NCBI RefSeq assembly: GCF_006345805.1
Contig: NC_042999.1
Location: forward strand, 141,918,001-141,982,000
DNA from: Octopus sinensis
Taxonomy: Eukaryota
DNA length: 64,000 nucleotides
Direction: 5' to 3'
Of this stretch, positions 1 to 44,385 are shown in pieces; within the stretch, counting starts at the first letter, position 1, and every line of letters begins with the position of its first letter. The notes under the pieces were generated by a model. The model made no database searches and was not told the origin of the DNA. It saw only the letters and a program-made list of their open reading frames with translations. The position numbers were made by a program, and so were the translations under genes.

Positions 1-702
1 GCTCCAACTCTTCGACTTGGTCGTGATCGTGCAAAGGATTTCCAAGCTGGTTCAGTCCGAGGTAAGACAAAACGCAAAAGAAAATTGGATTCCAGCTCTG
101 ATGATACACTGTTTGCTCTGTCTGTTTGCAATTCTGAATTGCAACAAAGATGTCAATCCCTCACAAATGTTGGATCTGAATCTTACCGAAAAGCAGTTCA
201 CAAATTTCTTGAAACAAAAGAAGTTATGGATTTATTAATGCTACCAGATGAAGTTTTTTCAAGTCAACCTCCTTGTGAGCCAATTCGGGGAGAAATTTAC
301 CTCATGAAAATAGATCCTTCACAGGAATCCAGTGACTGGACTAAAGATGGCTACTCTTGGTTAAGTTTAGGATCGAATGATTTAATCTTGAATCAGAGCC
401 CTGCTCTGCGTCAAAGTACTTTTCGAATGTTAGTTAATGAGATTGAAACTTGTCTGCTAAAACATGTTTATCGTTCTTTTAATAATAACCAAAAAGTTGT
501 CATTCATTATGTTACTGATGAAAGACTTAGTAACAGTAAGTCTTATCCACATTCTATGGACATCACTGGAACTTCATCAGTACCACAAACCCATTTAGGA
601 ATTACTCAGTATTACCACCAGCTAGTGGAAGATTGTAATGTTGACAGTCAGAAATCATCTGAGGCTCTCTGGGAGATGGCCCCCACCAACAAGGAGAAAT
701 CT
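1..702 (+). CDS. Coding exon (5' end outside window) encoding a basic KTKRKRK patch and a CG-1-like DNA-binding domain
   Basis: Frame 1 is open from base 1 to the GTAAGT donor at 703 (phase 0). Motif order PPxxPxxGEIYL...DWTKDGYSW...KHVY...VVIHY resembles the CAMTA CG-1 domain (P..G...RKDGYxW...R.Y.L...VLVHY). No downstream partner exon recognised before 11 kb. Confidence 0.7.
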
Positions 703-1022
703 GTAAGTTAATGATACTTTTTCTTTCTTTTTTTTTTACCGATATTAGATCATATTACCTTATATTCTGGATTTTTATGTTAAGCTCTACATTCAGCCTG
801 CTATACCAAGGTTTATTGAAGATCATTATTTTATTACTCTAATATCTACTTTTTTTCCATACTGGTATGCATTCAATAAGTCTCTAGTATTCCTCATCAC
901 CATTTTTGTCTTTATCCTGCATCATTTTATCTGTGAAGTTCATTAACTTTCTCATACCTGGCCTCACTACTTCTTTCTGTTTTCTTCGATCTGCTCATCA
1001 CACATCTTCCACTATCTGTTGC

Positions 1023-3038
1023 TTTGCCGTAGTCAGTACCGCTTGTGGTACCAGTGCCGGTGGCACACAAGAATCCATCCGAACGTGGCCGTAGTCAGTA
1101 CCGCATCACTGGCCATCGTGCTGTGGGCACATAACAAACACCATCCGGTCGTGGCCGTTCGCCAGCCTCATCTAGCACCTGTGTCGGTGGCACATAAAAA
1201 CACTTTCCGAAGACCCGGCAAGACTAGTCAGGCCATAAACCATGGCCCCTACCTGGGACGTAGTCAGTCCACTGTGCATACCTTCCTCCTTGTGATACTT
1301 GTGAAGGCCTGTTGAGGCAAGTGAAAATCAAATCAAAATCAAAATCAATCAAAACAAATCAAAATAGATGAACATCAATGGAATTTGTATCTTTGTGGTA
1401 CAGTGCCGGTGGCACACAAGAGAAAACCATCCGAAAGTGGCCGTAGCCAGTACCGCATCGACTGGCCTCCGTTCTGTGGGCACATGACAAACACCATCCG
1501 ATCGTGGCCGTTCGCCAGCCTCATCTGGCACCTGTGTCGGTGGCACATAAAAACACCATCCGAAGACCCGGCAAGACTAGTCAGGCCATAACCCATGGCC
1601 CCTACCTGGGACGTAGTCAGTCCACCTGTGCATACCTTCCTTCTTGTGACACTTGTGAAGACCTGTTGAGGCAAGTGAAAATCAAATCAAAACAAATCAA
1701 AATAGATGAACATCAATGGAATCTGTATCTTTGTGGTACCAGTGCCGGTGGCACACACTTTGTGGTACCAGTGCCGGTGGCACACATGAGAACCATCCAG
1801 TGCCGGTGGCACACACTTTGTGGTACCAGTGCCGGTGGCACACATGAGAACCATCCGAACGTGGCCGTAGCCAGTTCCGCATCGACCGGCCTCCGTGCTG
1901 TGGGCACGTAACAAACACCATCCGATCATGGCCGTTCGCCAGCCTCATCTGGCACCTGTGTCGGTGGCACATAAAAACACCTTCCGAAGACCCGGCAAGA
2001 CTAGTCAGTCCACTGTGCATACCTTCCTTCCTTCTTGTGACACTTGTGAAGACCGGTTGAGGCAAGTGAAAATCAAATCAAATCAAATCAAAATAGACAA
2101 AATAGATGAACATCAATGGAATTTGTATCTTGTGGTACCAGTGCCTGTGGCACACAAGAATCCATCAGTGCCGTAGTCAGTGCGGTGGGCACATGACAAA
2201 CACCATCCGATCGTGGCCGTTCGCCAGCCTCATCTAGCACCTGTGTCGGTGGCACATAAAAACACCATCCGAAGACCCGGCAAGACTAGTCAGGCCATAA
2301 CCCATGGCCCCTACCTGGGACGTAGTCAGTCCACCTGTGCATACCTTCCTTCTTGTGACACTTGTGAAGACCTGTTGAGGCAAGTGAAAATCAAAATCAA
2401 ATCAAATCAAAACAAATCAAAATAGATGAACATCAATGGAATTTGTATCTTTGTGGTACCAGTGCCGGTGGCACGTGGCACATAAGAAAACCATCCGAAC
2501 GTGGCCGTAGCCAGTACCGCATCGACTGGCCTCCGTGCTGTGGGCACGTAACAAGCACCATCCGATCGTGGCCGTTTGCCAGCCTCATCTGGCACCTGTG
2601 TCGGTGGCACATAAAAAACACCATCCGAGCGTGGCCGTCTGCCAGCTCGTCTGGCACCTGTGTCGGTGGCACATAAAAAACACCATCCGAGCGTGGCCGT
2701 CTGCCAGCCTCGTCTGGCACTGTGTCGGTGGCACATAAAAACACCATCCGAGCGTGGCCGTCTGCCAGCCTCGTCTGGCACCTGTGTCGGTGGCACATAA
2801 AAACACCATCCGAGCGTGGCCGTTTGTCAGCCTCGTCTGGCACCTGTGTCGGTGGCACATAAAATCACCCACTACACTCTCGGAGTGGTTGGCGTTAGGA
2901 AGTGCATCCAGCTGTAGAAACACTGCCAGATCTGACTGGACTGGTGCAGCTTTCGGGCTCCCCAGACCCCAGTTGAACCGTCCAACCCATGCTAGCATGG
3001 AAAGCGGACGTTAAATGATGATGATGATGATGATGATT
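1023..3038 (+). mobile_element. Non-autonomous retroposon with internally amplified tandem repeats and an RTE-type 3' tail
   Basis: Marker AATAGATGAACATCAATGG recurs at 1363, 1701, 2101 and 2421. A ~60-bp subrepeat occurs about 5 times at ~2560-2860. Ends in CCAACCCATGCTAGCATGGAAAGCGGACGTTAAA(TGA)n, the same tail as the RTE copies elsewhere in the window. Confidence 0.75.
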
Positions 3039-3314
3039 ACCTGTTTATATCAGTACATCTGCTTCTCCTGCATACATTAGCTAACACCTTTAAATCTTAG
3101 CCAACAACAACAGTAATATCAATTATCATCATTGCTACAGACATGAGCAACACTTATTAATATGACGTCAGTCCTTATCTTCATGAGAACCAGTAATAAT
3201 TGAGCCACTAGAATATTAATCTTTCTATCAAATGGTCAACTTTTCACACTTAACTCTCAACCAGTAGAAAGTTCAATACCTCAGTCTAGCACCTATTTCT
3301 ATTCATAATTCTTG

Positions 3315-3637
3315 TAAAAAGCACCATTTGAGCATGATCGTTACCTGCATCGCCTTACTGGCACTTGTGATGCTGTTGCCAGTGCCGCTGGACTGGCTCC
3401 TATGCAGGTGGCACATAAAAAGCACCATTTGAGCGTGGTCGTTGCCAGTACTGCCTGACTGGCACGTTAAAGCACCCACTACACTCTCGGAGTGGTTGGC
3501 ATTAGGAAGGGCATCCAGCTGTAGAAATTCTGCCAGATCAGATTGGAGCCTGGTGCAGCCATCTGGTTCGCCAGACCTCGGTCAAATCGTCCAACCCATG
3601 CTAGCATGGAAGTGGACGTTAAATGATAATGATGATG
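3315..3637 (+). mobile_element. Short copy of the RTE-tail retroposon family
   Basis: Same 3' block (AGCACCCACTACACTCTCGGAGTGGTTGGC...CCAACCCATGCTAGCATGG...TGATAATGATGATG). Confidence 0.7.
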
Positions 3638-3895
3638 CAATCTAATTAATAAATCATCATTACTATCATTATCACATATTTACCTTAATAATGATTGCAA
3701 AATCTTCCCTGCAAAAATTCCTGTTATCTGGAGTAGATGCCACATCTCAGTACACCTAACATATACATGGATAATATACATAACAAAGATGGGTCAGTCA
3801 TAAATAAACAATGATGTAAATATCTCAGAGGAACTCATAAAACATTATGCATTAAGTGAATGATGGAAAATCTTCGTCTTGATACACTACTAAAC

Positions 3896-5490
3896 CATCA
3901 TCATCATCATTTAACGTCAGTTTTCATGCTGGGTTGGACGGTTTGACTGAGATCTGAAGAGCCAGCAGCTGCACCAGGCACTAATCTGATCTGGCAAAGC
4001 TTCTACAGCTGGATGCCCTTCCTAACGCCAACCACTCTGAGAGTGTAGTGGGTGCTTTTTACGTGCTACCAGCACAGGAACCAGTCAAGTGGGCAACAAT
4101 CACATTCGGATAGTGCTTTTTATGTGCCACCGGCACTGGGGCCAGTCAGTGGGTACTGGCATCGGCAACATTCGGATGGTGCTTTTTACATGCCACCAGC
4201 ATGGGAGCCAGACAGGGGGCACTGGCCACAGCTATGATATTGGTTTCACTTGACCCAACAGGTCTTCTCAAGCATATCATATTGCATGACGCATCAGGGG
4301 TACTCTTAACTGAGCCGGACATGTATGGCTGCAATCTCACTTTAGTTGTCGGGTCTACACAATCACTGTATGTCTCCAAAAGTCTTGGTCTCCTGTCATT
4401 GCCTCTGTGAGGCCCAATGTTCAAAGGTCATGCTTTACCACCTCATCCCATGTCTTCCTGGGTCTACCTCTTGCAAGGGTTCCTTCCACAGTTAGGGAGT
4501 GGCACTTCCTCATGCAGCTGTCCTCATCCATATGTAACACATGACCATACCAGCACAGTCATCTCCCTGCATACCACATTTGATGCTTCTTATGCCCAAC
4601 TTTTCTCTGAGGGTGCTTACACTTTGTTGTGTATGCACATTGACATTACACATCCTGTGGATCATACTAACTTAATTTCTTTCAAGCCTACACATGTCCT
4701 CAGCAGTCACGGCCCATGTTTCACTGCCGTGTATCATGGTAGTTTGCACACATGCATCATACAGTCTACCATTCATCCTGAGCGAGAGGCCCTTAGTTGC
4801 CAGCAGAGGTAGGAGCTCCCTGAACTTTCCCCAGGCTATTCTTATTCTAGCCACTAAACTCTCAGAGCAACCACCCCCACTGCAGACTTGGTTGCCTAGG
4901 TAGTGGTAGCTATTAACTACTTCTAGTTTTTCCCACTGGCTGTGATGGAATCTGTTTTCTGTACATCTTCAGTGTTTACTGCTCCTGTGCATCTGCCACA
5001 CACAAAAACTATTTTCCCGGTTAACTTTCCTTTGATATTGCTGCACCTTTTATGTGTCCATAGCTTACACTGGATACATTGTATGGAGTTTCTACCCACA
5101 CCTTTTCTAGAGATCGAGCAGGGCCATATACCTGAAGGGGATTGTGGTTTGACAACCTTCCTACTTACTAATACTTTGGATTTTACTAGGTTGATCCTAA
5201 GGCCCTTCAATTCTAGACCTTGCTTCCACACCCTAAACTTCATCTCTAGTTTTGGCAGTTTCTCAGCTATTAGGGCAAGGTCATCAGCATAGAGAAGCTC
5301 CCAGGGGCAGTCTGTCTTGAATTCCTGTTATTGCCTGGAGGGCTATAATGAATAAGAGGGGACTGAAAACTGATCTTTGGTGAACCCCTACTTCTATTCA
5401 GAAGTCTTCACTGTACTCATTGCCAACCCTCACCTCACTGACAGCATCCCAGTACAGGGCTTGTAGAGCTCTTACCAATCACTCTATAAC
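3896..5490 (-). mobile_element. 5'-truncated RTE-clade LINE (degraded RT C-terminal part plus 3' tail)
   Basis: Minus-strand ORF fragments: KGLRINLVKSKV, CSI..KGVGRNSIQC..CKLWTHKRC, ARIRIAWGKFRELLPLL, MIHGSETW. (ATC)n tail at 3896. Confidence 0.9.
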
Positions 5491-6369
5491 CATGAAAGAT
5501 AATATCCTCACAGCATTGTAGGCTAATAAACATAAAAAAGAAGAAAAGAAAGCAGCTGTACACTGAATCTCTTTTTATCACTTAATCGGTGAACTGTACT
5601 TCTATTCAGTATGTGACTGCAGCTGAATGAATTGAACTTTTGATAGTTTATTGTCTTTGTCAGAGATACAACTCACTCCAGGTATATATATATAAACTAT
5701 CAACTTTTCTGAGCTAAGAGCTGTAAACTATTGAGTCTTTCAATTATATTTTATAGAAATGTAACACATATATCCATGAGATTTTTATACTTCTAAAATA
5801 TACTCGTTAGTCCTTTTTTCTTCTGCTTTTGTCAAAATATAAATATTCAGAGCTGTATGGAAATTATTGTTAACTCTACCTTTAATTTTTCCTCAGTCTG
5901 TATTGTGATGTTCATATCTTTCCATATATATGTTGATCTCTTCTTATTTGAATTTTTTTTCTGGATTATAGCTTTTCTTTAAGATTAACTGGTGCTCAAA
6001 AGGTATCCTGCTTTCCTATAGTAGATTTGGCCTGAAAGTAGGATGAACCACTCTTTAGTGTTCTTTTTCGTAATCTCATTTCTCCCTTGAATACATTTAA
6101 AACTGGAATATTTTATACTATTCTAGAATATAGCCTATCAACCAGCAATTTGAACAAAATTAGTCTAAGAGATTAAAATAAATAGGATCAACATAGTATT
6201 TTAAATTTACATAGAAAAGGTCGTCCTAGAGTAAATAGAACTAATATCTTGTGAATTGGAAAGAAACAGACAATAATAGTAATTAGACAAGAGTTCAGAG
6301 AACAAGAAACCATGCTCTTCTTCCCAGTACTGATGGGACAAATAAACATGAAGATTTCAGTTTGAGATT

Positions 6370-6900
6370 ATATATAAAACATAAAAGAATATGCAAAATG
6401 GTAGACCTGTTTTTATGTTTCAAATCTCTATATTGAAAATGATTGAGTTGTCTTACCAAAGTTCAGTATCAAGGATGGGGAGTCTATTGTTGGGGTGCCT
6501 ATTGGATTAATCTATAGTTACCTTGATACTTTAGTGGATGGAGTTAGCTACTTGCTGGATGCTCTCATTTACATTCCTCTCAGTTTCTACATTACCATTA
6601 CTAGAGTTGGTCTTAACTATGATATTAATGTCATTTACATACCTACTGTAGAGTAGAAGAGTTGTGGACTGTTCTGCTAAGGATTGCTAAAGTTTTCAGT
6701 CCCACAAGGTCATGAAGAGGCTGGCCACATCTTCAGCTACACCAACATCAATGGCTGCACCTTGAACCTGTATATATAGTTTCTTGTTAAACTTTACTAT
6801 GTGGTTCTTCAAGGTGGTTCTTACACTGGCCCCTATGCATGCACACAAACAAAAAGAATGCAGCTTCAATAATGGACAGAGTTAACAACTATTGAAAAGG
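6370..6900 (-). mobile_element. Penelope-like element RT remnant
   Basis: Hand translation of the minus strand gives TLKNHIVKFNKKLYIQVQGAAI...ASLFMTLWD, LYSRYVNDINII (YVDD-like, ~6629-6644) and NRLPILDTELW, with stops and frameshifts. Confidence 0.7.
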
Positions 6901-6991
6901 TTGCAAGACGCATCAAAAATTTTAGAATAAGTGGGTGCTTTTTACATGCCACCGGCACAGGTGCCAGGGGAGGCTGGCAACGGCCACAATC

Positions 6992-7445
6992 GTCTTGGTT
7001 TTGGACGACTGTTGCTGTAATTTAACCCCAGGAGACATAGTCTCCAGCTGGCTACATGACACGATCTGTGTCCTTGTATTTTCTAACAAGGGAATCTAGC
7101 AGCCCCACTCGGCTCAAAATAATATCTGTGTATCGCAATTCCTGGGTTATTTCTCTTCATCAGCACAGAATAATCGTTCGACTAGAGGTGGCGCTGCCAA
7201 ATTCCCATTCGAAAACTATATATTTTGAACGGGAATTTGGCAGTGCCACCTCTAACCGAACAATTATTCTGTGCTGATGAAGGAAAATAACCCGGAAATC
7301 GCGATACACAGATATTGTTATGAGCTTAGTGGGGATGCTGGATTCCCTTGTTTCAAAATATAAGGACACAGATTGTGTCATATAGCCAGCTAGAGACGAT
7401 GTCTCCTGGGGCTAAATTACAGCAACAGTCGTCCTAAACCAGGAC
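6992..7445. repeat. ~450-bp near-perfect palindrome (arms ~220 bp) with a hammerhead-like motif in each arm
   Basis: Left arm GTCTTGGTTTTGGACGACTGTTGCTGTAATTT... is the reverse complement of right arm ...AAATTACAGCAACAGTCGTCCTAAACCAGGAC; centre at ~7218. Confidence 0.9.
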
Positions 7446-8601
7446 TGCCATATTATGTTGGCAAACAATCTTTACTACAAAGTACTGTTGCTGAATATCT
7501 CATGTTGTGAGATTTAAAAATAGTAATTTTCTAATCCAGCTAACTGTTTACATTTAGCTTGTTTAAACTTTTCATATTTATGAAAAATAAAATGCAAACA
7601 TTTCATTTTTCATCTCTTTCTGCATAAAGAACTGCTAGCTAAATGTGCTAAATATATTTAAAAACAAATGATTGACAGTGTATAAAAACACAGATAGGTT
7701 GACTAAGCATTATTAAAGCCATATGGAAAATTATATTTGAATGTAGTATTTTAATTTAAATTGTTAGTAGTCATCATCATTTTACATCAGCTTTCCATGC
7801 TGAATTGAATTGGATGGTCCAATACAATCCAACAAGTTAATAGATTGAGTTGTGCTCCAGGCAATGATGTAGCTTATAGGGAAACAACCCTCCCAGCACA
7901 GTTTTCAAAATTGATGACTTTTTTATGTGCCCACTCTCACTAACATTAGGACCTGGCTATGCCCTTTGCTCCAGTGTCTCAATTTTGGCACAGTTTCTAC
8001 TGCTGGATGCCCTACCTAACACCAACCAATTTAAATAGTGTACTAAGTAATTTTTTCATAGTACCACCACTAGCGAGATTTGCAATGTGCCAGTGTAAAG
8101 AGACCCCATGAGTAAAAGGGGAATAGGAAAAAGAGATTGATTTTTAAGTAAGGTGATGAGAGTAAAGCAGAATAGGAGGAATAGACTTATTGTTGTGAGA
8201 GGGTGTTATCGGCACTAGTAACTTGTAAGACAAAAAAGAAAAAGGAAAAGGAGTGTACTTGAGAGAGAGAGGGAGATGGCTACAGGTCACTCTTAGTCTT
8301 ACAAGCTGGGTAGATATGCTTTGTTGTGGAGGTCTAATATGGCTACAACATGTCCCTTGCTTTTCATCAGTTTGCTTCAAGACCAATTCTGCTCCCCCAC
8401 TGCATTTCTACATTTTCCAAACACTTCAATTGATTTTATTAAAGTTTTATCAAAGCTTATGGTTTTTAAGCTTTTACAAGAGAACTTTGCAATTGTAACA
8501 GAAAATGTGGTGCATCAAACAATATAAGTGAGACAGAGTAGAGTTGAAATTTCCAAGCTATAAGGAACTATTGTAGTTATAGTTATAAAAAATGGAGAGT
8601 A

Positions 8602-9435
8602 TGAGGTGCATTCAAAAAGTATCTGACTTCATTTTTTCCCACTGAAAATAATGCAGTGTGGGCAAAATCCTTTGTGTGAGAGGTGATGTCACTCTTTCAG
8701 CACATGTTTTCATACTGGTAGGCCATGTTAGTTCCCGGCTGTTACACCTAGAATACAGATGTGTAGTGGGCACTCGGTGGATTTTCGTTATTGCATCAAG
8801 TTTTGGCAAAAGCTTAATGATACTCAAGTTCAACCCATTCAGAAAATTCAGCAGGCCTTTGCCAATGATGCTATGGGCAAAACTCAGATCAAGGAGTGGT
8901 AATGCATGCTTCAAACATGGCCACACATCAATGGAGAGCAAGGCATGCTCAGGCAGGCCATTCACAAGCTGAAACAAGGAGCTGATTGAGAATATTTGGT
9001 GAATAGTCATGGAAGACTGTCATGTAACAATCCAGGAAATTGTTCATGAAGTGGGAACAAGCACGAGATCAATGCATTTCATTTTAATGAAAGATTTGTG
9101 CATATGGAGAGTGTCTGCACAGTTTATCCCCAAGGTGCTGGCAGAGCAGCAGAGTTGCCTCTGCATGGAAATCACATAGAACATGCTGGACTGTGCAAAC
9201 CATGACCCAGACTTCATGAAGACCATTATCACTGGCGATGAGACATAGGTTTATGGTTTCTGCTCAATGCATTCGGTCATCTTGCATGAAAATGAAAATC
9301 TGACAAGTGCATGCTACACGTCTCTACTCTCGGAATATGCTTGAAGAGTGATGTCACCTCCCACCCAAATGATTCTCCCCATGTGACATTAGTTTTGGCA
9401 GAAAAAATAGTTGGATACATTTTGAATGCACCTCG
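8602..9435 (+). mobile_element. Internally deleted mariner element
   Basis: TIRs TGAGGTGCATTCAAAAAGTATC / GATACATTTTGAATGCACCTCG. + strand remnant DPDFMKTIITGDET*VYG matches the first-D motif of the mariner transposase. Confidence 0.85.
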
Positions 9436-11177
9436 GATGCTTGGAGGTCAGTTATTGAAGGGTTGGTGAAAGCTTCTCTACTTGTTGGATGTTTTTTTGT
9501 GAATACTCCATTTTCTACTTATGAGAACAGTAACTCATTGATGCACACGAGGCAGTGAATAAGCAAAATCATTACAGCATCAGACAAAAGGAGTGGTGGC
9601 ACTTGTTCTGGTTCATTGCATTCTGAGTTCAAAGCAGTGGATTAATAGAATTGTTAGATTTTAGGATAAAATGTTTTACAGTATTTGTTCTAGTTCTTTA
9701 CGTTCTGAGTGCCTAGGAAGGTGTGGCAAGAGGTACCATGTAAAAAAAATTTTTTTTTTAATCCAAAAGAAGGTAACAAGAAAACACCTCTATAATCCCA
9801 CAAAATTTCCATAAGCATATAACGCAAGTCAAAGAAGCCATTATTTGTTTACCGACCTCATCACGTAAGGAAGAAACTTATCTTTTAGGGAGTTACTAAG
9901 CGTTCATGCCTGCAGTATCTTGATACTGGTGCAAGAGAGAAAACAGGGCGGAGGTAAAGCATACATACACAACCCGTTTTCGGCGTAACAAAAACCCTAA
10001 CCCTAAACACCGGTGTACATATTCCTTACTTTAGCCGAAAACAGCTTTTGTAATCAAAACTGGGCGGCTTCCTTAAAAAGTTACGTTATGAAGATTGTCA
10101 GACTTGGTATATAAAGGTTTTAGATGTCTATATACTAGTTAAAAGCGACCTGGGTGTGCTGCACTTTTCAACTATATATATATGTAGCCAGCATATGTTA
10201 CATGCTGGCTACTTGAAATCTTATATAGTTTTTATCCTTGATTTTATATATATATAGTGATCATGTTCTCGTGTTTTGATGCTGTTAAGCAGAGCTAAGT
10301 TATCACATACAGACTGCTGAATGAATATGCAAGTATGCATGTTTGAGATTGATGTGAAGAAAAATCAAGTTTGCCGAGAGAGGTGTGCGATGAAGCAGAG
10401 TGACCATGTCAAAGATGTACAATTCAATAAGAAACATGCATAAAAATGGTTTTCTCTGAACTTTCAAATCAAAATTATATTTCTGTATGCTAAGTAAATT
10501 TAAATTTTAAGCGCTTTTGCAATAACTATCACTACATCATGCGGAAGGAAAAGAGCGAGAAATTGGTGTTTTCTTCCTTTTAAAAATTGCTTTTAGTATT
10601 TTCGTGTTTCACACAACGGAAGTACAATTCTGAAAGCAATATTATCGGAAATTCCGTGCCTTTTTCTTTGTCATGAAGTTAGTGAAAGCTATTCCCAAGC
10701 GCCGTCCAGTTTTTATACAAAAGGATGACATAATCAGATCCATTTGCAAATCAAATTTCCGAATTTATTTTTAAAACTTACGGCGATACGCCAAACTTAC
10801 TGTTGTGGCAAAGAATTTACTCTGAAGAGACCCAGGTAACTTTTCAATTTAGGGAGAAAATATTTCACCAAAACAAATACAACAAAACTTCTGCAAGTTG
10901 TTATTAACGACAACTGTTAGAAGAGTTCTAAACACAAATTATTCCGGAACACAGCAACCGGATGTCTAACAGAATAATAAAGACTAATAAACCTGACACA
11001 CCATCAGTTGATTCACATGCGGATGAATACAATGTTTACGCCAAATGAGTTTCCGTGTGTATTTCACATGTACTGTTAACAGACATGTCTTGTTGTGATA
11101 CCCTCTTCCTGAGAGGTACTCCATAAATTCTCAGTCCTTTCTTTCCTTTTTTTTTTTTTACTTTGCTACCCATAAAT

Positions 11178-11723
11178 ATGCAAAGACTAAATAACACGAC
11201 TGCATATAAAACGTCTTCTGGTAATAAAGTTGCGGGAGGTGAATGTAAAAGAAAAGCTATAACGCTTGAAGAGAAGCTAGATGTAATACAGCGTTTTGAA
11301 CGTAATGAAAGAACATGTGATATTGTTCGTGCAACGGGAATAAAAGAGTCTACTCTACGCACCATTAGAGACAATGCCGAAAAAATTAAAGCTAGCTATA
11401 TTGCTGGAACAAGCCTCAGTGCTTGCAAATCTGTAAGATCGCGACCAAGGGAACTTGAGGAGATGGAGCGGCTTTTATGTTTGTGGTTAGAAGATCAATC
11501 AGAAAAACTATCTGGAACAAGCTTTCTCACTATAAAAGAAAAAGCTTTATCAATTTATGAAGACCTGAAGAAGAAAGCCGAAAACCCGGCAATCGTGCCT
11601 GCTTTTAGTGCTAGTAGTGGCTGGTTTGTTGGTTTTAAGAATCGTTATACTTTTTATAATGTGAGGTGTGGTGGTGAAGTTCTTAATACACACGAGGAAC
11701 GTGCTATGACATTTCGTCCTAAG
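11178..11723 (+). CDS. Unit 1 exon 1: Tigger/pogo-derived HTH_psq + CENP-B HTH DNA-binding domain
   Basis: Intact 182 codons: KRKAITLEEKLDVI...ELEEMERLLCLWL...FSASSGWFVGFKNRY. Donor AAG|GTACTG (phase 0) lies just after the HTH; no DDE domain or TIR recognised. Confidence 0.8.
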
Positions 11724-12253
11724 GTACTGTAACACGTATTTCATTAAGACATGTAAATTAAACATTCGTTCACAAATCACTTTTTCCAATACATAATTTT
11801 TCTTTTTTTATTCTTGCACAAAATCGAGACTATTGCTTTATCTCTGTCCCAAAACCGATAAATATATAATCCTTTGTTTGTTCTTTTTATAGAAGCCAAA
11901 TTTGATCGTTATAAAAGTGTATTGCATTAATAATAATATATAATGCAGTAAGGATTTGTTACTACTGACATTATATTTTAAACCTATTTATGGTAAATAT
12001 TACCTTCTAATATCTCATAGTATTTTGACAAGTTTTCCAAAGTGGTTTATCTCTCTCTCTGTCTCTCTATTTCACCATTTCATGCATCATGCATCATGCT
12101 TTTGTGTTCGCGATACACAACACTCGCAGAGTTGATGTTAGAAAATAAAGAGAAATAACTCATCCTGGAAAAGTTGGCAATATAAAGGGATGTCTAAAAG
12201 TAACAATTTCATAGATTAATATCAAAAGTGACAACGACAATTTTTCTTTTCAG

Positions 12254-12693
12254 CCTCTAGCACACCAACAGCGTTCACCTTTGGCTATTTCTGATTTGAA
12301 TCAACCGGTGGAATTCAGTTCATCTGACCAGTTAAAAGTCAATTCTAACAACGATATACAAAAGGCTATTCAACCTTTCAACATGAATGATGTGCATCTT
12401 TCTAGTCGATCTATCATTGATATTGAACAAACTGGGAGATCTTTCGGAGTAAAACCTCGCATGAAACGGCTTCCTAAATTGAAACGCCAATTTGGATCCG
12501 GAGCTAAAGATTTATCAGTGAACAGATCTCATTTATCTCAGAGGCCATCCAACCAAATTAGATCTCATCAGCGATGGATAAAAGAATCTACTGGTAATTC
12601 TTCTGTTGGAGAGCAGCATTTTGACGTAGTTTTAAATAAAAATTCTGTAGAATACAATTCAAAAGTACCAAAAATTAACAGCAATTCAATAGC
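12254..12693 (+). CDS. Unit 1 exon 2: low-complexity basic linker
   Basis: Acceptor TTTTCTTTTCAG|CCT (phase 0), open frame PLAHQQRSPLAISD...NSIA, donor GC|GTAAGT (phase 2). Confidence 0.8.
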
Positions 12694-12940
12694 GTAAGTG
12701 TCTTAAAAACATTTTTTTTTCTTTCAAAGAGAAATCTACTTTTCGTTTTGTGTGTATAAAATGACAAATTGTTTTATCTTAATGTGTAACATTTCACTTT
12801 TATATAATACAGATGATATTTTCTGTTAGATATATAAACTATCAAATATTTTATTACATAATGTATCAATATTCAGTTTTGATGCATTTTATATTCGAAA
12901 ACATTTCGATTTCATTGATAACAATTTATTTTATTTAAAG

Positions 12941-13121
12941 TCATTCCCTGTCTGATGAAGTCGTAGTTCTTCCACAATCAACTATACCAGCTGTTCAGAA
13001 AGAGAAACGTACTTTAGTTGTACCAAATCACCAAGTAGCAGTAATGTCCAATCTATTCTCTATGTGGAAAGTTGGGCGTTTGTGTGACTCGTATATTAGT
13101 AATGGTACCACAAATGTAATG
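12941..13121 (+). CDS. Unit 1 exon 3: BTB/POZ N-terminal half
   Basis: Acceptor TTTAAAG|T completes the phase-2 codon. HSLSDEVVV...VPNHQVAVMSNLFSMWKVGRLCDSYISNGTTNVM; donor ATG|GTATGT (phase 0). Confidence 0.9.
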
Positions 13122-13861
13122 GTATGTATGTTATAATTGTTTATCCCTTTTACTCAGTATAAAATTTACATTTTACAATACTAATGAATCATTAAAGATA
13201 TATTTATAATATTGGTACAGTAAAATAAGCTGGTATAATTTAATATGTCAGAATTCTGATCTAGTTCAAAAAAGAAAGTTATGGATGTCTATGTCATTGA
13301 AATAACATGTTGACGGAAAGATCAGTAGTTCAAAATACTATCTAGTGTCTCTTAAGTCTCAATGACAATTTTCAGTTAGATGTCATTAGAAGATGCAAGT
13401 GCCACAAGTAGTAAGTATACTGTGTAATAAATAACTTGTTGTTCTGAGTCTAAATCTTCTTATTGGTAAAACATGCAAAAGAATAACATTCCTATCCAAT
13501 ACTGGAAAATATCTGTGATTTCAAATCTGAGTAAAATTGCTGCATACTTTACCTACTACTTGGGATGTTTCTCAGCCAGACAATATACACAAGTATTTAT
13601 GTGGTAGGATCTAACTGAAATTAAATTTAAGTTCCATTTCTTAAATGCTCTTCTCTCGGTTTTGTCAATATCAATGATGGATCAACTAGAAAGATGCACA
13701 TCATTCATGTTGAAAGGTTGAATAGCCTTTTGTATATTGTTGTTGACTTTTAACTGGTCAGATGAACTGAATCTTTAAAAAATGTGTGCATTGTAGAGAA
13801 TTTCAAATAGCATTTAGCAATATATAAAGCATGTTTTTACCACATTTATTTTATCTTTCAG

Positions 13862-14899
13862 GTTCATAAAATGGTTTTGGGAGCTGTGTGTCCAAAAGTA
13901 TTGCCCATTCTATATAACACCTCAAGTAGTTTGTTTCCTAAAGTGACATTTCCAAGTTCAGTCAGTAAAGAAGCACTTTTAGCATTTGCAGAATACATGT
14001 ACAGTGGTGTGTTAGATCTGAATGAAGATATTCTAGTGCAGCTGAAAACTATTGGTGAGAGATTAGATATGAAAGATTTTGAACAACTTTGTAGTAATGA
14101 ATTGAACAAAGCTAAGACTAAAGATATTTTATCAGCTGTGGTGGAACCTTTGTTGGCAGAACCTTGTTCTTTATCAGGATTACTCCCTTCCAGAACACAT
14201 GGAGACTCTAATGAGGTTCAGAACTCTATGTTAATGAAGATACTTGGAAATATTTACAGCAATAATAGCATGCAAACTGATGTTCCTGTTACCATTGCAT
14301 CAACATCTGCATCCAGTTCTTCTTCTGTTTCTGATGTAAGGTCTGCAGAAAATATGGCTACAGACCAGATTGTTGATATCAAAACTGAAGTGGAATCAGA
14401 AATAGAGCCTGCAACAAACCACAACTCTCTACAATTAAAAATGGAACCGTGTAGTCCTGGTGAAAATCAATATAGTATTCAAGAAGAATTATTCATGGAT
14501 ATTAGCAACATTACTTCCAATAATAATCTTCATCTAACACCTGGTACCAGTGCCACTTCTGGAAATATCATCAATAACCAGTATAGAAATGATCTAAATA
14601 TGGATTCCAATGATATCATCAATATATCTGATATCCCTCAATCTGAAGAGACTTGTTTATCCCAGCATACTGAAGATTGTGATAAAGATACTGATAATCA
14701 GAAAGAACTACAGTTAATTTCAGTAACATCTGCCACAGGGAATATAAGTGAAGACAGTCTCAGTAATAATTCTGATTTGATAGAGATCTCCAGTACCATA
14801 TGTACAGAACCCCCACCAACATCAAATTCTAGACCATACCCTGTAAGTTTATTTTCTGTGAATGGCAGTAAAATTCCAACTACATTACCAGATAGCTGA
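13862..14899 (+). CDS. Unit 1 terminal exon: BTB C-half plus disordered S/N/T-rich tail
   Basis: Acceptor TCTTTCAG|GTT. VHKMVLGAVCP...EALLAFAEYMYSGVLDL...LDMKDFEQLC is typical of BTB; stop TGA ends at 14899. Spliced CDS totals 2205 nt. Confidence 0.9.
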   Translation, partial: VHKMVLGAVCPKVLPILYNTSSSLFPKVTFPSSVSKEALLAFAEYMYSGVLDLNEDILVQLKTIGERLDMKDFEQLCSNELNKAKTKDILSAVVEPLLAEPCSLSGLLPSRTHGDSNEVQNSMLMKILGNIYSNNSMQTDVPVTIASTSASSSSSVSDVRSAENMATDQIVDIKTEVESEIEPATNHNSLQLKMEPCSPGENQYSIQEELFMDISNITSNNNLHLTPGTSATSGNIINNQYRNDLNMDSNDIINISDIPQSEETCLSQHTEDCDKDTDNQKELQLISVTSATGNISEDSLSNNSDLIEISSTICTEPPPTSNSRPYPVSLFSVNGSKIPTTLPDS

Positions 14900-15894
14900 A
14901 CATATTTGTTGGATCTGTTCCCGATTTAATAGGTTTGTGTTTCATTTTCTTCCAGTACTCTATTGTATTTATTAAGAGTTCTTATATAATGAGCAAGAAA
15001 TCTAACTTCATCATCTCAAAAAATTAGAAAAGTCTATTTTTTCTTTAACAAAGTAGGAAATTGTTTATTAGAAATGATTAAAAATGATATATATATGTTA
15101 GATTTGATGCATGTACATTAGATTTGGTGTAAAATTGTAACTTTTCACACTGTTAAACTTCTGTTATTATCTTAAATTTATTAATATTGATGCAGGTGTG
15201 TCTGTTCCCGCCTACATAGTTTAGAATCCAGTCCCACTGTGTGGAACCTTGGGAAAGTATCTTCTACTATAAGTCTTGGGCCAACCAAATCGTGTGAGTG
15301 GCTTTCATAGGCAGAAACTGAAAGAAGGCCCATCATGCATGTGTATGTAATATATAGTTAAGAAGTACGCTTTCCAACCAGATGATTTCAGGTTTAGTCT
15401 CAATGCATGGGACCTTGGGCAAGTGTCTTCTACTATAGCTCCAGGCCAACTGAAGCATTGTGAGTTGATTTGGGAGATAGAATTTGAAAGAAGCCTATCT
15501 TGTTTGTGTGTATTTATTTTCTAAAATCTCTCATCACTCAATGGCTTAATTTTTGTGTGTGTGTATGTTTGCATCTCCTTTTTTTTGGACATAACATGAT
15601 AGCTGTAAATAAATATCACTGTTATACAAGCAATATTCTGTGAAAACATGTCTGACCATGGGGAAAATATTACCTTGCTTGGTAACAGGTGAGGGTTGGT
15701 GACTGAAAGGGCATCCAACCATAGAAAATCTGCCTCAGTAAACTCTTTTCAACTCGTGTGAGCATGGAAAAGTGGATGTTAAAATATTGATGATTGATTG
15801 ACGATGATATGTATATACATATATGTGTATGTATGTATATCTATATAGGTATGTGTGTATATATGTATGTATTTGTATATATTATACATATATA

Positions 15895-16111
15895 TGAGAG
15901 GGTGCTGAAAAATTCCTGGCTTTGGGTAAAATAAAATACAGGCAGATCAATTAATTATGATTTTATTCAACATATTCCCCTCTCAGATTTACACACTTAT
16001 TGCAGCAGCCCTTCAGTTTTTCTAAGCTCTGTAAAAGAACTTGGAAGATTGGGCCTCCAACTAGGCCTTTCACAAAACCCTTAGAGGCAGGAACTTTTCA
16101 GCACCACCTTG
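15895..16111. mobile_element. Mariner-type MITE
   Basis: TIRs GGTGCTGAAAAATTCCTG / CAGGAACTTTTCAGCACC flanked by TA. Confidence 0.7.
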
Positions 16112-37640: not shown

Positions 37641-39166
37641 AAATGGTATGGTTCATTTCCAATGAGAAAATATTACCTTGTTTGGAAACATGTAAAGATT
37701 GACAACAGAAAGGCACCTGGCCATAGAAAATATGACCCTTACAAGCCTGGAAAATTGGGCATTAAAACAATGATGCTGACTTTGGAAATCAGATAAGATT
37801 ATGACTAAGCTAGGAGCCCTTAAAGGCCTTATAATGTTCATAGAACTTGTATAGTTTCAATTAATCCCAAATTACCATTTCATGCAGATTATGAGACCAT
37901 CGTGGTAAATGAAAATATATGACTACACAGCAGCGAGTATAACGAATAGCCTTTCTCAGAACTGTATTGGCCTTATAATTTCATTAAAGACCATGTTAGC
38001 CAAACAAATAGATGATCTACTTAAGTCTCATTCAGATTCACAGATTAATAAAGCCATATCCTCTATCTATCAAAATTTTTATCATTGTTATCCACAATAA
38101 ACTATTTGTAATGTCAGTTTCAGCAATCATTGTACAAAGAAAGCTATGTCACAAAACATGAATTCTATATAAGAATATATGAACCCAAAATTGTTTTAGT
38201 TCAAGGCTAGGAATATATTCAGAAGTAAAATTATATTTGTTACCTGACTGAATGGATATGTTGTCAGCATTGTCATCACTAGAAAGAATGATCAGTCACT
38301 TGGAAATTAATTGGGCAGTACACATGTTTTCAAAACAAGATTGAATCTTCCCAGATTAGAATAGAATGCAAGGAAAATTATTAAGCTATCAGTGATGTAC
38401 AAAACAATTCAAAAATAGAGATGTTCATTAAAAATATTTTTTTTTATTTTCATAGGCATGAAATTATCCAAAAAAATTTAAAGATGTAAATGAAGTTACT
38501 ATACTATCTAGCAATTGTAAGCGAATAAATAAAACCACAAACTTTTCTAAATTCTAGTTGGGACCTTTTTTCCAGAAAATGGTCTAAAACAAGTAGAGTG
38601 CACAAAAGGTTCATTAAAATTTGAGTCCTACGAAGGAAAAGGATAACGTTAAAGCTGTTGTTATGAAAACAATTAAATGCTACTTCCTATAAGTCGGTAA
38701 TGGAAACTTTTGATTGGCTAAAATTACATTAACGATTTGTTACTTTTTTATTACTAATTTCTAGGAAACAAAAGGTGATTTTTGCAATTAGCATGCAAAA
38801 CTGTATCAGTTACAGTTCTGGTGGTTATTTGTAAAAGTTCTTAGAAATTTTTCCCTGTGTTACGAAACCAAATTTTATCATTTACTAACCAAAGATTGAT
38901 GAGGTAAACAAAACATTCTCATGTGAAATGAGGTAGAACGGATTTGACTAAGGATCGTAGCTGGCTGACTCTGTATAAGAAAATGTCGGGTTCGTAATTT
39001 GAGAAGGAAAAAGTGGCAGGCAGTCAAGCGAATGATGATCAGTCTGGGAACTTGTTTGTTTTTCTTGTAATGTTTATAACGTCAAACATTTTGTTAGTAG
39101 AGTTACAGTAGAAATACGAAACTTATATTATGAATAAACTCCTGTTCGTATATGCACTCACACACA

Positions 39167-40200
39167 CGGTAGGGTTCTCATGTACGAACAATTCTTTAAA
39201 CAAACATCGAATAACGAACGATTTTTCCGAAGAAAATTAAACTCGCTTAACGAGCTAAAATTTGATTAACGAAGCACGAACAGACTACGCACGCATATGT
39301 GAGTGGTAGAACGTTTACGAACGGTACGCTAAATGAATAAATTGTAGTGAATAACGAACGAATAGACTACGCACACATATAAGTAGCTGGGAAGGATATA
39401 CGAACGGTTCGTTAACGTACGCAAATTTTCATATTTCATATAGAAAATATTATTTCTCATTTTTAGCTAAAAAAAATAAAACCATGGATCGACAGAGGCG
39501 AATTAGAAAATCAATTACTATAGAAACTAAGAAAGAAATAATACATAAACATGAAAATGGAGCTAGTGTTAGCAACCTTAGTTTGGAGTACAGAGTGGCA
39601 AAATCAACTATCTGCACCATACTGAAAAACAAATGTAAATTTAAAAATGTTCGGGTAGCTAAGGGAATAACCAAGCTTAGTAAATCGCGTAACAATTTTA
39701 TTGAAGAGATGGAAAATTTACTTTTGGTATGGATTAAAGAAAAAGAAATTGCTCGTGAAAATATAAGTGAATCGATGATTTGTGTAAAAGCCAAACAATT
39801 ATTTGATGATCTTGTAGCGAATTCTCCCAGTGGAAATGATACTGTGCTGGATTTTCTTGCTTCAAAGGGTTGGTTTACCAGATTCCGGAAAAGAAATGGA
39901 TTACATAATGATGTTAAGTGTGATAAGTCTGCTAGTGCAGACCATAAAGTAGCTCGTGAGTACCACTTTTTAAACTTTATGGCTATGAGTGGCTTCGTTT
40001 CACAGCAAAATTTGAACTATGATGAAATGGGGCTTTTTTTTTTTTTTTTTTTTAATAAATTGCCGTTCAGAAGACCCTAGAGCACTTAAAATCATAAGAA
40101 CCGCCTTGGGGTTTGGACGAACCACAAATCACCAGTCATCTTTTCACTGAGTAGTTGTCTGTGGTGTTTTGTCCTACTGTGCCTAAGTACCTTAGGGACA
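39167..40200 (+). mobile_element. Truncated Tigger/pogo element (5' end plus DNA-binding ORF 39484-40080)
   Basis: AACGAAC-rich subterminal region; ORF RKSITIETKKEII...EEMENLLLVWI...FLASKGWFTRFRKR; the DETGLFWKK motif has decayed into a poly-T run. Confidence 0.75.
39484..39955 (+). CDS. Candidate alternative first exon of unit 3: Tigger-derived psq + CENP-B HTH
   Basis: ATG at 39484; consensus donor C|GTGAGT at 39956 just after the HTH, phase 1. In frame with acceptors at 41628 and 44386. Confidence 0.5.
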
Positions 40201-40789
40201 ACAATCTTCTCTCGAAGTTCTTTTGGTAATGGATAATGACTCAACTAAACCGTCTTTAATGTACTGATTGCCGGAACAGTTTAGTTTGTAAAGTGCATTT
40301 CTTGCCTGTCATCACATCTTCTGTTCTCTAGGTCATGGACCAACAGGTCTACATAGTCCGAGGTATATTTGTAAAAAATTTCATTAAAAAATAAATATTT
40401 TCTTGAAAGTTAAGACGAATTGAAGTGGACGCCGGTGAATTTTCCGAAATTCCCCACCTAAAACACTTTCCCCAAAAGTTTTGTATATTCGAAATCTACA
40501 TGATATAACTCATATTCGTAGAAAATTTCATTAAAAAATATCCATTTTTCTGAAAGTTATGATCATCCAAAGTCGGGGGGTGGGGGCAGAAATCTGTAGT
40601 TATGCCAATTTATATATGATGTTTAATATTACATTAGCTTTAAATATTAAGTGACAGTTTACCAAATTCACAGTGAAACTTTATAACACTGGAATCGTAC
40701 GTAGAATTACAAGATGAATTAATATTCACTGATATTACTGCTCTGCATCTACAAATGAAATGCTTCAGTTCATCGTAGGAGTCACTGGG

Positions 40790-41130
40790 TATTTTGGACC
40801 TAACAATATCCCTCATCCAGGTGACTTGACCTAGGTTGGTGAAGCATAAGCTTCTCCAAGTGGTGTTCTACTGGCCTCACCGATCACCTCTTTTAATCCA
40901 GAAAGATTTAGATGCTTTCTCAGCAGCCTCTACGGTGTTTTTGATTGATCATTAGCTCGTTTTTATAATGCCCGGTATACAATTTGCGAACTCTCGACTG
41001 GCAAACACCTCGCTCTCCACCCATTTTGCGGCAGTCTTTTACAACTAGCTCCTGATATTTAGCTATCTCTCTTGCGCCTCCTGCCATCTTGTAGGTCACG
41101 GCAAACTCCAACAGAATTAGCTGCTTTGTA
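40790..41130 (-). mobile_element. HERO/R2-group LINE 3' remnant (restriction-like endonuclease region)
   Basis: Minus-strand LILLEFAVTY...REIAKYQELV..DCR resembles the IELTVPWE...K.AKY.ELV motif. Confidence 0.5.
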
Positions 41131-41644
41131 ATTATGAACATTAATATTCGTGCTAAAAAAAAAGACTTGTGTAATTACGTCCCTTTAATGCCTCTCTGCT
41201 GAAATATTTCATTTGAGTGTTATAGTGACGGTCACAGTTGGCGGGACAAGAATTTTGACTCTAAATAATATATGTTCAATGAAGTTTAAGTTTTTGTGTG
41301 TTTTTGAAAGACTGATATTCCATGCTGTGATTGTCCTTTACCATAGTTTCTATTAATTTTAATACCAGTTCTCGGAAACTACCGAAAATTAGTCCCTTTT
41401 AAGGAGAGAGACAAAAAGAGAAGGATGATGTCTCTTGATTGTCTGTGATATCCCTTCATTTTTCACTATTAATATATTTGTTTATGCTACCCTTCTTTTT
41501 CACTATTGATATATTTATTTATGCTATCATTTGGTTAACTTATTAAACACTGAAAATTTTAATATCTGTTTAATCTCGAATATCGCCGCATCAATTAACT
41601 TCCAAGTCACATCATTTTATTTCTTAGGAAATCTAGTTAAGATA

Positions 41645-42116
41645 ATGCCTAGGCTCAAAAAATACAAGACTGAAGCAGAGCGACGAGCGGTTACACGACA
41701 GCGTGCAAGAATCAAAAGAGCTAATGAAACACCTTTAGAGAGAGATCAAAGATTAATGAATTTGTCTTTGAATGAATGGCATCGGCGAAGAAATGAGACA
41801 TTTGAAGAGAGAAAGGAGAGACTTAAAAGGCTGTCCTTAAATGCACGAAAGAGACGGGCTAAGGAAACGGCAGAAGAGAGAGCAAATCGGCTTCGAAAAC
41901 TATCTGAGAACGTAATGAAAAGACGTGCCGGAGAATCGAGTCAGAAAAGAAACAAAAATACAAACAAGTGTGCTTCAAAGCCAAATTGCCATAACACTCA
42001 AGTGGCTAAAAGGCAGCGGGGCCGAAAGCCGACTGCTAAAGGCATTAAGATCGCTCTGACCAACTGTTATGATGACCAAGAAAAATATTACCTGGAGCAG
42101 ATGCATCAAGATCCTG
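41645..42116 (+). CDS. Unit 3 exon 1 (coding part): STPR-type repeats
   Basis: Three full 23-aa repeats (41726-41932) plus a degenerate fourth. Acceptor TTTCTTAG| at 41627; donor CCTG|GTATCT (phase 1). Confidence 0.8.
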
Positions 42117-42443
42117 GTATCTGTCCCTATGATTTTTTTTATTCATTTGAGGGTTATAATAACTAGTGTATCTAATTTTCTTTTACTCTAACACCATTAA
42201 TGTAATAACTACCATGTCTAATTTTTGCGGTTGTCTTTTTTCCTCTGACAAGAAATCAATGTTTATATTCTTTCTGCTTTGGATTTGTTTCTTTTTGTTG
42301 GATTTCTGTAATCTACTGACACGTTTTTAACTTTACATATCCCATGCCATTTTGACAACTATTCAAGCATGAAATTCGTTTCTTTTATATTTCTGTTTCA
42401 TTAATGTGTGTGAGAGGTGTGTATGTATGTGTGTGTGTGTATA

Positions 42444-43554: not shown

Positions 43555-44385
43555 TATCATATTAATATATCAACTCCGAATGAAAAGTTGTCAAAATACC
43601 ATAGGAATCGTAGAAGTAACAATATGTTCATAAACTTTGCTCAATTTATGTTACATTCTAATATAAATATTGCTACTATGTTCTGATGTAATTTCATCTT
43701 TGATTCGCGGCTGGTGCTATTTGTGTCAACATTCTCGGTATGCATTCTGTCCACTACTAACGAAGGCTTGACTCTCACAGTCTCATGTTGAATGTGGCAT
43801 ACTCCTCAGGGCATAAATAGCTATAACTCTACATTGGATTACGATTCATTGGCAACAGCTTCACTTGCTTTGGAAAATTCAATGAAATTTCCAATTGTTA
43901 TGAATTATAATATCCTATCATTAATTCCTTTCAATAATAGTAAATAATAGATTGAAATATAGATATCTTAATTTGTATTGATTACAAAAATGAGGCATAG
44001 TATCGAATGACGTTGATAGAAGGCTACTACCTTTACCTAATATAAAAACGTTGAACAGCCGTGATTAACGGATTAGACGGCGAGTAGAATGAAGTTTGAA
44101 TAAAAGACCTCTTTGAACTGGTTCATGATACAAATATACATATAAATTCTTAATTTTGATAATGATAAAATGAACGTTGTTGGTTTGGGGAAATAGCAGT
44201 GAAGATGAGCTATATTAATTTTGAGCTTATAGATACAATATATTACACTTTAAAAACAAAATTTACACTAAAATGGGAAATGTGAAGTTTGTGAAAATAG
44301 AGTAATATTTCAAAATACTTGTTTGTTGTTTTCAGTCAGAATAATGTTTATTTGGATGTAACTTGTAACTTTGATGTTTTGACAG

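Follow-up and report, generated by a model that had tools for sequence, protein, structure and literature searches.

The Drosophila genes mod(mdg4) and lola are BTB genes that possess dozens of alternative DNA-binding exons. In the stretch of DNA analysed here (hereafter the window; 64,000 nt of Octopus sinensis, NCBI RefSeq assembly GCF_006345805.1, contig NC_042999.1, positions 141,918,001 to 141,982,000 of the forward strand), at least four BTB genes of the same organization follow each other in tandem on the same strand. As far as it is known from gene models, the first of them (unit 1) resembles the Drosophila genes in joining a common BTB module to alternative DNA-binding modules that are clustered and in part transposon-derived. 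The polarity is opposite, however, with the variable modules at the 5′ side as alternative first exons and the BTB module downstream, and each octopus gene offers two or three alternatives instead of dozens, with no sign of trans-splicing.

The fusion of transposon-derived DNA-binding domains to BTB is a known theme, and our findings leave the current understanding of it standing. In passages of the survey by Mukherjee and Moroz (2023; PMC10027918), most of the THAP and CENPB transposon-derived factors of Octopus are described as carrying a BTB/POZ domain, and the unit 1 gene is evidently one of these THAP-BTB/CENPB-BTB proteins. The survey mentions neither CG-1 nor STPR, and these passages contain nothing on alternative 5′ ends or a tandem array.

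Two further described systems bear on a single region of the unit 1 protein, here called the CG-1-like domain. CAMTA proteins combine CG-1 with TIG/IPT, ankyrin repeats, and IQ calmodulin-binding motifs, whereas in the O. sinensis and O. vulgaris models of the unit 1 protein (P0039 and P0021, respectively) the CG-1-like region is accompanied by THAP and BTB alone. Nearly the entire CG-1 profile is covered by the octopus domain, whose family scores above the Pfam threshold; its nearest relatives, however, are proteins with tandem repeats or a MULE transposase and not CAMTAs. The second system is the WRKY-GCM1 superfamily, which comprises the DNA-binding domains found in MULE transposases together with domesticated descendants of these, FLYWCH and FAR1/FHY3 (Babu et al. 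2006; PMC1702500). The octopus domain is similar to these in its predicted N-terminal helix and four-stranded sheet, in its WRKY profile and fold matches, in the MULE transposase fusions found among its relatives, and in its recruitment into host transcription-factor-like proteins, but its family has no conserved zinc ligands. CG-1 is not mentioned by Babu et al. (2006), and a literature search for a tie between CG-1 and WRKY-GCM1 or MULE found no paper making the link. The “Cg-1” of a paper on Meloidogyne Tm1 is, by its title and abstract, apparently unrelated.

The window opens inside an exon that we identify, with high confidence, as the second coding exon (exon 2) of the unit 1 BTB gene, a gene with two alternative 5′ ends on a common body. 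The original prediction had described this sequence as an orphan exon of at least 234 intact codons with a GTAAGT donor that might provide an alternative 5′ cassette for the unit 1 BTB through a 702/12254 junction. Its intactness, its donor, and, at the level of gene models, the junction are all borne out, whereas the exon turns out not to be an orphan. On the + strand, the window holds the 3′ part of the exon (1–702, 702 of 743 nt), where frame 1 is free of stops through all 234 codons while the forward frames 2 and 3 contain many. With frame 1 open and GTAAGT at 703–708, the donor is of phase 0. The prediction had also pointed upstream for the start of the exon, and there it lies, 41 nt before the window at the phase-1 acceptor tattctattttacAG/GAAAAT, so that the complete exon 2 spans −40 to 702 (743 nt, phase 1 to 0). 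Sequence outside the window was taken from GCA_006345805.1 CM016861.1 (L004), in which window position 1 corresponds to position 22821 and the 16,899-nt overlap is identical.

The ATG of this form resides in a THAP exon (−20819 to −20600, + strand, phase 0 to 1, donor CCG/GTAAGA) that is the first coding exon, encodes most of the THAP zinc finger, and is found 20.6 kb upstream of the window. The common body consists of a linker exon (12254–12693, phase 0 in and 2 out, donor at 12694) that begins at the acceptor ttttcttttcAG/CC, an exon for the N-terminal half of the BTB domain (12941–13121, phase 2 in and 0 out), and a last exon (13862–14899, phase 0 to the stop) that encodes the C-terminal half of the BTB domain followed by a long acidic and serine-rich tail ending in PYPVSLF, all on the + strand. 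Joining the THAP exon, exon 2 (−40 to 702), 12254–12693, 12941–13121, and 13862–14899 produces an open reading frame of 873 codons that is identical to the public O. sinensis model P0039 (873 aa), with canonical AG and GT at all junctions and consistent phases. The 5′ unit therefore comprises two exons, the THAP exon and an exon for the THAP tail, a nuclear-localization signal, and the CG-1-like domain, in a splice pattern that had already been annotated.

Another alternative first coding exon (11178–11723, + strand) starts at its own ATG at 11178, encodes a pogo-type HTH module (Pfam CENP-B_N and HTH_Tnp_Tc5), and ends in the phase-0 donor AAG/GTACTG, which makes the linker exon the partner of both 702 and 11723. 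Together with the same three shared exons, it reproduces exactly the model P0022, which is XP_036357331.1, isoform X2 of LOC115209549. By elimination from this isoform X2 record, LOC115209549 is probably the name of the whole gene, whose names are masked in the database. Both the 702/12254 junction and the HTH alternative are thus present in public annotation. We also considered the HTH exon as an internal cassette placed after exon 2 and rejected it: the one AG that follows its poly-T tract would start the exon at 11186, which is not in phase with the donor at 702 and runs at once into a stop, and the in-phase AGs sit in purine-rich coding sequence, so that an in-phase acceptor with a polypyrimidine tract does not exist. 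Since the HTH exon is not a cassette, the two heads are mutually exclusive by construction, as had been proposed, and we infer that the two forms arise from alternative promoters.

The 702/12254 junction rests on gene models, which can err when they are of the Gnomon type, and on an orthologous cuttlefish transcript that is described below. A query with the conceptual spliced protein retrieved public cephalopod proteins. THAP-form models exist for O. sinensis (P0039), O. bimaculoides (P0038), and O. vulgaris (P0021, a lift-over), and HTH-form models for O. sinensis (P0022) and O. bimaculoides (P0040, LOC106872000 X2). The public records of the locus (LOC115209549, LOC106872000, and P0021) have the same exon structure as derived here, and both isoforms match to the residue. 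They differ from our reading in being titled “uncharacterized protein” and in having precomputed THAP and BTB domains only, with the CG-1-like domain unmarked. The O. vulgaris model has a 3′ end and C-terminus different from those of the other models, and its C-terminus is probably wrong. Exact look-ups of P0021, P0038, and P0039 found three genome assemblies only and no transcript contigs. A 120-aa peptide across the 702/12254 junction had 0 matches in a collection of 5.8 billion proteins, a search that also missed the models that contain this peptide exactly.

The domains of the THAP form can be followed along P0039. Pfam THAP (PF05485) matches residues 5–91 with 49.3 bits (cut-off 23.9), and THAP1 is the best sequence match among solved structures (PDB). 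The exon boundary falls at residue 74, with the last 18 residues of the match (74–91) encoded by exon 2 and the rest by the THAP exon. The first codons in the window (1–21, + strand), APTLRLG, with an AVPT-like motif, belong to this end of the THAP domain. The basic stretch KTKRKRK (64–84, + strand), which reads KVRRKRK in the cuttlefish protein P0002, is a probable nuclear-localization signal. The long form of the BTB/POZ domain (PF00651) follows in the same reading frame with 32.5 bits (cut-off 20.5), its nearest solved chains being gigaxonin, ZBTB17, ZBTB9, and PLZF, and the motif at the end of the acidic tail is kept in paralogs and in cuttlefish. The full protein had no match in NCBIfam, a prokaryote-oriented library.

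Between the THAP tail and the donor lies the CG-1-like domain (193–531, + strand), for which a WRKY/NAC-type β-sheet fold is predicted. Pfam CG-1 (PF03859) matches the 234-aa translation of the exon at residues 65–170 (E = 9e-4, 19.4 bits), somewhat upstream of the residues ~85–230 originally proposed, and covers profile positions 2–113 of 116. The gathering threshold of this family is 23.5 bits, which neither this score nor that of the 141-aa domain alone (21.1 bits) reaches, and with the whole 873-aa P0039 as query CG-1 was unreported at E ≤ 0.01. A word-indexed search with exon 2 alone retrieved one unspliced genomic contig (P0001/L001), and relatives came to light only through an exhaustive HMMER search, which identified 20. 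Two phmmer matches, P0004 (E = 4e-21) and P0005 (E = 7e-18), score 33.6 and 33.5 bits for CG-1, respectively. Tandem copies of the domain occur in P0003, P0007, and P0020.

The most serious objection to the name given to this domain is that it might be no relative of CG-1 at all, either an unrelated β-sheet module or a plain WRKY-type domain, with the Pfam match being noise. The sub-threshold score of the octopus sequence itself could be read in this way, and so could the behaviour of an alignment of 26 domain copies (A2), whose profile found only WRKY chains among PDB sequences (12 domains, best E = 1.6e-3) and in which Pfam WRKY was matched by 3 of the 26 copies and by the majority consensus (23.1 bits). 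However, 25 of the 26 copies match CG-1, which is their top Pfam family, and the consensus reaches 43.0 bits for CG-1 over nearly the full profile (positions 5–114 of 116), both consensus scores being above the respective cut-offs. Relatives with tandem copies reach 136.7, 95.5, and 78.7 bits for CG-1. Moreover, the invariant residues of A2 are P, W, W, and Y, and its columns hold no conserved Cys or His at the zinc-ligand positions of WRKY. We therefore consider a chance match unlikely; it is more probable that the CG-1-like domains and the WRKY domains are related to one another. For the octopus gene, the CG-1 assignment is one of family-level homology, the domain's own sequence being below the threshold.

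An AlphaFold2 model based on A2 (pLDDT 86.3, pTM 0.78; core at residues 72–177 of the window translation) predicts a helix at the N-terminus and a sheet of four long antiparallel strands (65–76, 79–91, 94–105, and 111–118). In a Foldseek comparison with the PDB, 9 of the 11 best matches were NAC or WRKY domains (probability 0.99–1.00, E from 1.5e-3 to 4e-2), with modest TM-scores of up to 0.62 when normalized to the target and about 0.4 when normalized to the query. We are confident that the predicted fold is the four-stranded antiparallel sheet of the WRKY-GCM1/NAC type. A CG-1 fold had been anticipated for this exon; the model supplies a well-supported sheet of the WRKY/NAC kind, and no CAMTA/CG-1 chain is present among the PDB sequence or fold matches, so that the comparison of folds is an indirect one with respect to CG-1.

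CG-1 domains are characterized by sequence-specific binding to CGCG-type boxes. The octopus copy of the domain has some unusual features. Its core has a net charge of 0, compared to +8 in both the cuttlefish ortholog and a paralog and a family median of +5, and a Gly that is nearly invariant in the family is a Thr. Because of this core charge and the replaced Gly, DNA binding by the CG-1-like domain may be weakened in the Octopus gene, and DNA recognition by the THAP/CG-1 isoform may depend mainly on its THAP finger. Of the paralog LOC115209547, both a CG-1+BTB and a THAP+BTB isoform are on record.

A different concern is whether exon 2 could be a decaying fragment of a MULE-type transposon that lies in an intron and was stitched into the models by gene predictors. 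The closest relatives of the domain outside cephalopods do include fusions with MULE transposases, most clearly P0012, which passes the Pfam MULE threshold with 30.7 bits, and less so P0008 and P0009, with weaker matches, and P0018, with a weak SWIM match. The surrounding intron is indeed filled with repeats. Codon comparisons argue against decay: exon 2 is 98.0% identical at the nucleotide level to that of O. bimaculoides, with 10 synonymous and 2 non-synonymous codon differences, and it differs from the Octopus-like contig L001 by 22 synonymous and 6 non-synonymous changes, while the intron directly 3′ of it is only 83% identical to O. bimaculoides. In addition, the frame, splice sites, and phases of the exon are intact, the window contains no transposase open reading frame and no further copy of exon 2 at the protein or DNA level, and the domain occupies the same position in a transcript contig and a genomic model from cuttlefish. 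The probability of a transposon fragment is accordingly very small. Judged by its substitution pattern, exon 2 is a real and selectively constrained coding exon and no chance open reading frame, since it is under purifying selection.

The other exons tell a similar story. Compared to O. bimaculoides, we counted 10 synonymous and 3 non-synonymous codon differences in the HTH exon, 9 and 3 in the linker exon, 3 and 0 in the exon for the N-terminal half of the BTB domain, and 15 and 6 in the last exon, and nucleotide identity was 97–98% for the exons and 83–94% for the flanking introns. Both alternative 5′ units look constrained, as synonymous outnumber non-synonymous differences in each.

The intron that separates exon 2 from the linker in the THAP/CG-1 isoform (703–12253, + strand, 11,551 nt) is rich in repeats and harbours the HTH exon, the alternative first coding exon. 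The absence of a linker or BTB exon from the 10 kb behind the donor had been noted before, and we likewise encountered no additional one in the interval 703–11177, where SINE-like repeats in tandem are found along with further lineage-specific sequence, most of it unalignable to O. bimaculoides. About 2 kb of the tandem SINE-like repeats (at about 1026–3035 of the window) are absent from the O. vulgaris assembly. An Rfam scan of positions 1–16000 of the window produced no match.

Independent information on the splice pattern comes from cuttlefish. One of the HMMER relatives, P0002 (901 aa), carries THAP, the CG-1-like region, and BTB, and is encoded by one continuous open reading frame of 2706 nt on a 3486-nt Logan contig (L002) from run SRR8281692. 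Its alignment to the conceptual Octopus protein is colinear and forms one HSP, with 41% identity across 846 columns. Its match with P0032, a genomic model from Acanthosepion pharaonis, spans 694 columns with 92% identity overall, is divergent only in the last ~65 columns, and starts exactly at the residue of the Octopus exon-2 boundary. Because this near-identity begins exactly at the exon boundary, the contig is most simply read as the spliced mRNA of a cuttlefish ortholog. Octopuses and cuttlefish represent deep cephalopod lineages, and if the contig is indeed a spliced mRNA, the order of THAP, CG-1-like domain, linker, and BTB predates their split.

The same transcript bears on the question of whether exon 2 also, or instead, feeds the downstream units as a shared 5′ cassette, for example through a 702 to 27928 junction. 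Such a role is conceivable on positional grounds: the units are all on one strand and organized alike, and in unit 2 the reading frame of the STPR exon is open from 27922 on, so that a start at 27928 would be in phase with the donor at 702. The public models of these units (P0030, P0023–25, and P0029), however, are separate genes that each have their own first coding exon, and no model joins 702 to another unit. The cuttlefish transcript, for its part, connects the CG-1-like exon to a linker of about the length found in Octopus unit 1 (152 versus 147 residues) and then to BTB, and no other unit contains a copy of the unit 1 linker. We regard a contribution of exon 2 to the downstream units as highly improbable.

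The idea that exon 2 belongs to an unrelated upstream gene and that its phase-0 donor is a coincidence, which had been left open as a possibility, can be set aside as next to negligible. In its favour is only that the window starts inside the exon, with the 5′ partner located outside. Against it, the next coding exon upstream is the gene's own THAP exon, whose domain is completed by exon 2, and apart from this gene the only one called upstream encodes a GSKIP domain and runs on the opposite strand. Exon 2 itself has no stop and needs downstream exons, and these are provided by the BTB body in the models and in the cuttlefish transcript.

With exon 2 placed in unit 1, we propose the following mode of operation for the gene. 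From the distal 5′ end, the THAP exon is joined in phase 1 to exon 2, which completes the THAP zinc finger and adds the probable nuclear-localization signal and the CG-1-like domain. The GTAAGT donor at 703 is then spliced across 11.5 kb of intron, rich in repeats, to the acceptor at 12254, also of phase 0, from where the message continues with the linker, both BTB exons, and the tail. From the proximal 5′ end, the transcript instead provides the ATG at 11178 and the pogo-type HTH exon (CENP-B_N and Tc5) and is spliced to the same acceptor at 12254. The outcome would be two nuclear proteins with an identical BTB oligomerization module and tail but with different transposon-derived heads for DNA recognition, among which the CG-1-like domain presumably binds DNA. 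Based on the established properties of BTB-containing DNA-binding proteins, the products may be nuclear, oligomerizing, BTB-dependent regulators of transcription or chromatin, with their targets set by the 5′ end used.

What is new here is the CG-1-like domain in the unit 1 gene, which had been unannotated; the splice pattern was known, and the novelty is modest in this respect. The gene would represent a conserved cephalopod regulator that places THAP and CG-1-like domains on a BTB scaffold and has a second isoform in which both are swapped for a pogo-type HTH; if true, the choice of promoter would re-target a common BTB module. A further novelty, at the level of the family, is a suggested connection of CG-1 with WRKY/NAC folds and with MULE transposases. 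An animal CG-1-like family with these ties is relevant to how the DNA-binding domain of CAMTA originated. Because the family bridges CG-1 and WRKY, is free of zinc ligands, and occurs in tandem and in MULE fusions, it suggests that the CG-1 of CAMTA may belong to the WRKY-GCM1/NAC fold class. Taken together, the locus could be a DNA-binding-domain swapping array that mirrors mod(mdg4) and lola, and the CAMTA CG-1 could be a zinc-free member of the WRKY-GCM1/NAC fold with a transposase-linked history, a combined picture that is tentative and somewhat short of an even chance.

The array itself varies in the number and kind of its heads. Unit 2 (LOC115209332) has one STPR head, with its model P0030 starting at 27937, unit 3 (LOC115209617) has three annotated heads, two of the pogo-type HTH kind and one STPR, and unit 4 (LOC115209550) again has one STPR head. 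If heads are swapped in the array, units 1 and 3 would pick theirs by alternative promoter, and for units 2 and 4 one STPR head each is annotated. The repertoire would consist of THAP plus CG-1-like, pogo-type HTH, and STPR, and all of these proteins would oligomerize via near-identical BTB domains. No homologs of the unit 1 linker were detected in units 2–4. Upstream, beyond the THAP exon, the neighbour is the GSKIP-domain gene, and intron 1, between the THAP exon and exon 2, contains nothing but remnants of LINE, mariner, and SINE elements. Within one of its own introns, unit 1 has a partial copy of its linker in inverted orientation.

Head-swapping in the tandem array of BTB genes is not confined to unit 1. 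In unit 3 (LOC115209617, window 39484-50028), three alternative 5' coding exons are annotated, which encode a Tc5 HTH (39484-39963), an STPR domain (41645-42118) and a CENP-B_N domain together with a Tc5 HTH (42650-43246). The STPR and CENP-B forms have a further exon in common (44385-44594), which is not seen for the form that starts at 39484. All three heads converge on the same BTB exons (46979-47146 and 48982-50028), and therefore the exchange of 5' DNA-binding parts occurs in two units at least, 1 and 3. Elements resembling the transposon remnants on the minus strand in unit 4 may have been the source from which the array's pogo-type HTH heads were captured; these remnants are a mariner HTH_48 ORF (58944-59309), a pogo-type DDE_1 ORF (60562-61251) and a Tc5-HTH ORF (61557-61946).

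The paralog LOC115209547 is located outside the window and is represented by the models P0033, P0034, P0036 and P0037. Its heads are annotated as alternatives, with THAP plus BTB in isoform X1 and CG-1 plus BTB in isoform X2. Whereas THAP and CG-1 are thus found in separate isoforms of this paralog, the window's gene combines THAP and the CG-1-like domain in one isoform. Some of the LOC115209547 models also contain a DDE_3 (Tc1-like) transposase between the head and the BTB part.

Most of the positive charge of the CG-1-like family has been lost from the core of the domain in the window's Octopus gene (window 193-531), which has a net charge of 0 compared to +8 in both the cuttlefish ortholog and paralog LOC115209547. 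In an alignment of 26 copies of the domain (A2), this core also has a Thr past the last strand at a position where Gly is nearly invariant. Among the relatives in this alignment (P0003, P0007, P0008, P0009, P0012, P0018 and P0020), single proteins carry three to six tandem copies of the domain, and it is also found N-terminally in transposase-like proteins of MULE (and possibly also SWIM) type. For both CG-1 and WRKY, the consensus of the family scores above the Pfam threshold; a literature search for a connection between CG-1 and the WRKY-GCM1 superfamily found no paper. A word-indexed protein search with a 120-aa peptide spanning the 702/12254 junction gave no match, even though the peptide is exactly contained in proteins that the same search finds otherwise, and nulls obtained from this search with short queries are not read as absence.

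Within unit 1, a segment of the shared linker exon (12313-12439, plus strand) has a 90% identical inverted copy (13652-13772) in the intron that separates the two BTB exons. The two segments are predicted to form an RNA duplex of ~127 bp (~−194 kcal/mol). The inverted copy is also found in Octopus vulgaris (44969-45088 of locus L003) and in Octopus bimaculoides (38708-38829 of locus L005, 91%). A-to-I editing could use it as an editing-site complementary sequence, or it could be a stem that controls splicing.

At the far 5' end of the unit 1 gene, there is a GSKIP-domain gene (1258-1650 of the O. sinensis locus L004), which precedes window position 1 by ~21.2 kb. As it is encoded on the strand opposite to the THAP exon and lies ~350 nt from the ATG of that exon, the distal promoter of unit 1 may be bidirectional.

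The O. vulgaris THAP-form model of the unit 1 gene, P0021, splices out a 106-nt “intron” within the last exon (window 14763-14868), and the resulting frameshift puts unrelated sequence in place of the conserved ...PYPVSLF... C-terminus. Because the proteins of O. sinensis, O. bimaculoides and the cuttlefish all retain this end, the “intron” looks like an annotation error. The O. vulgaris assembly also lacks a ~2 kb block of repeats, SINE-like and tandem with periods of 29, 58, 62 and 123 nt, that is present in the intron 3' of the CG-1-like exon (window ~1026-3035); apart from this block, it is 99.3% identical to the window across the next 16.8 kb.
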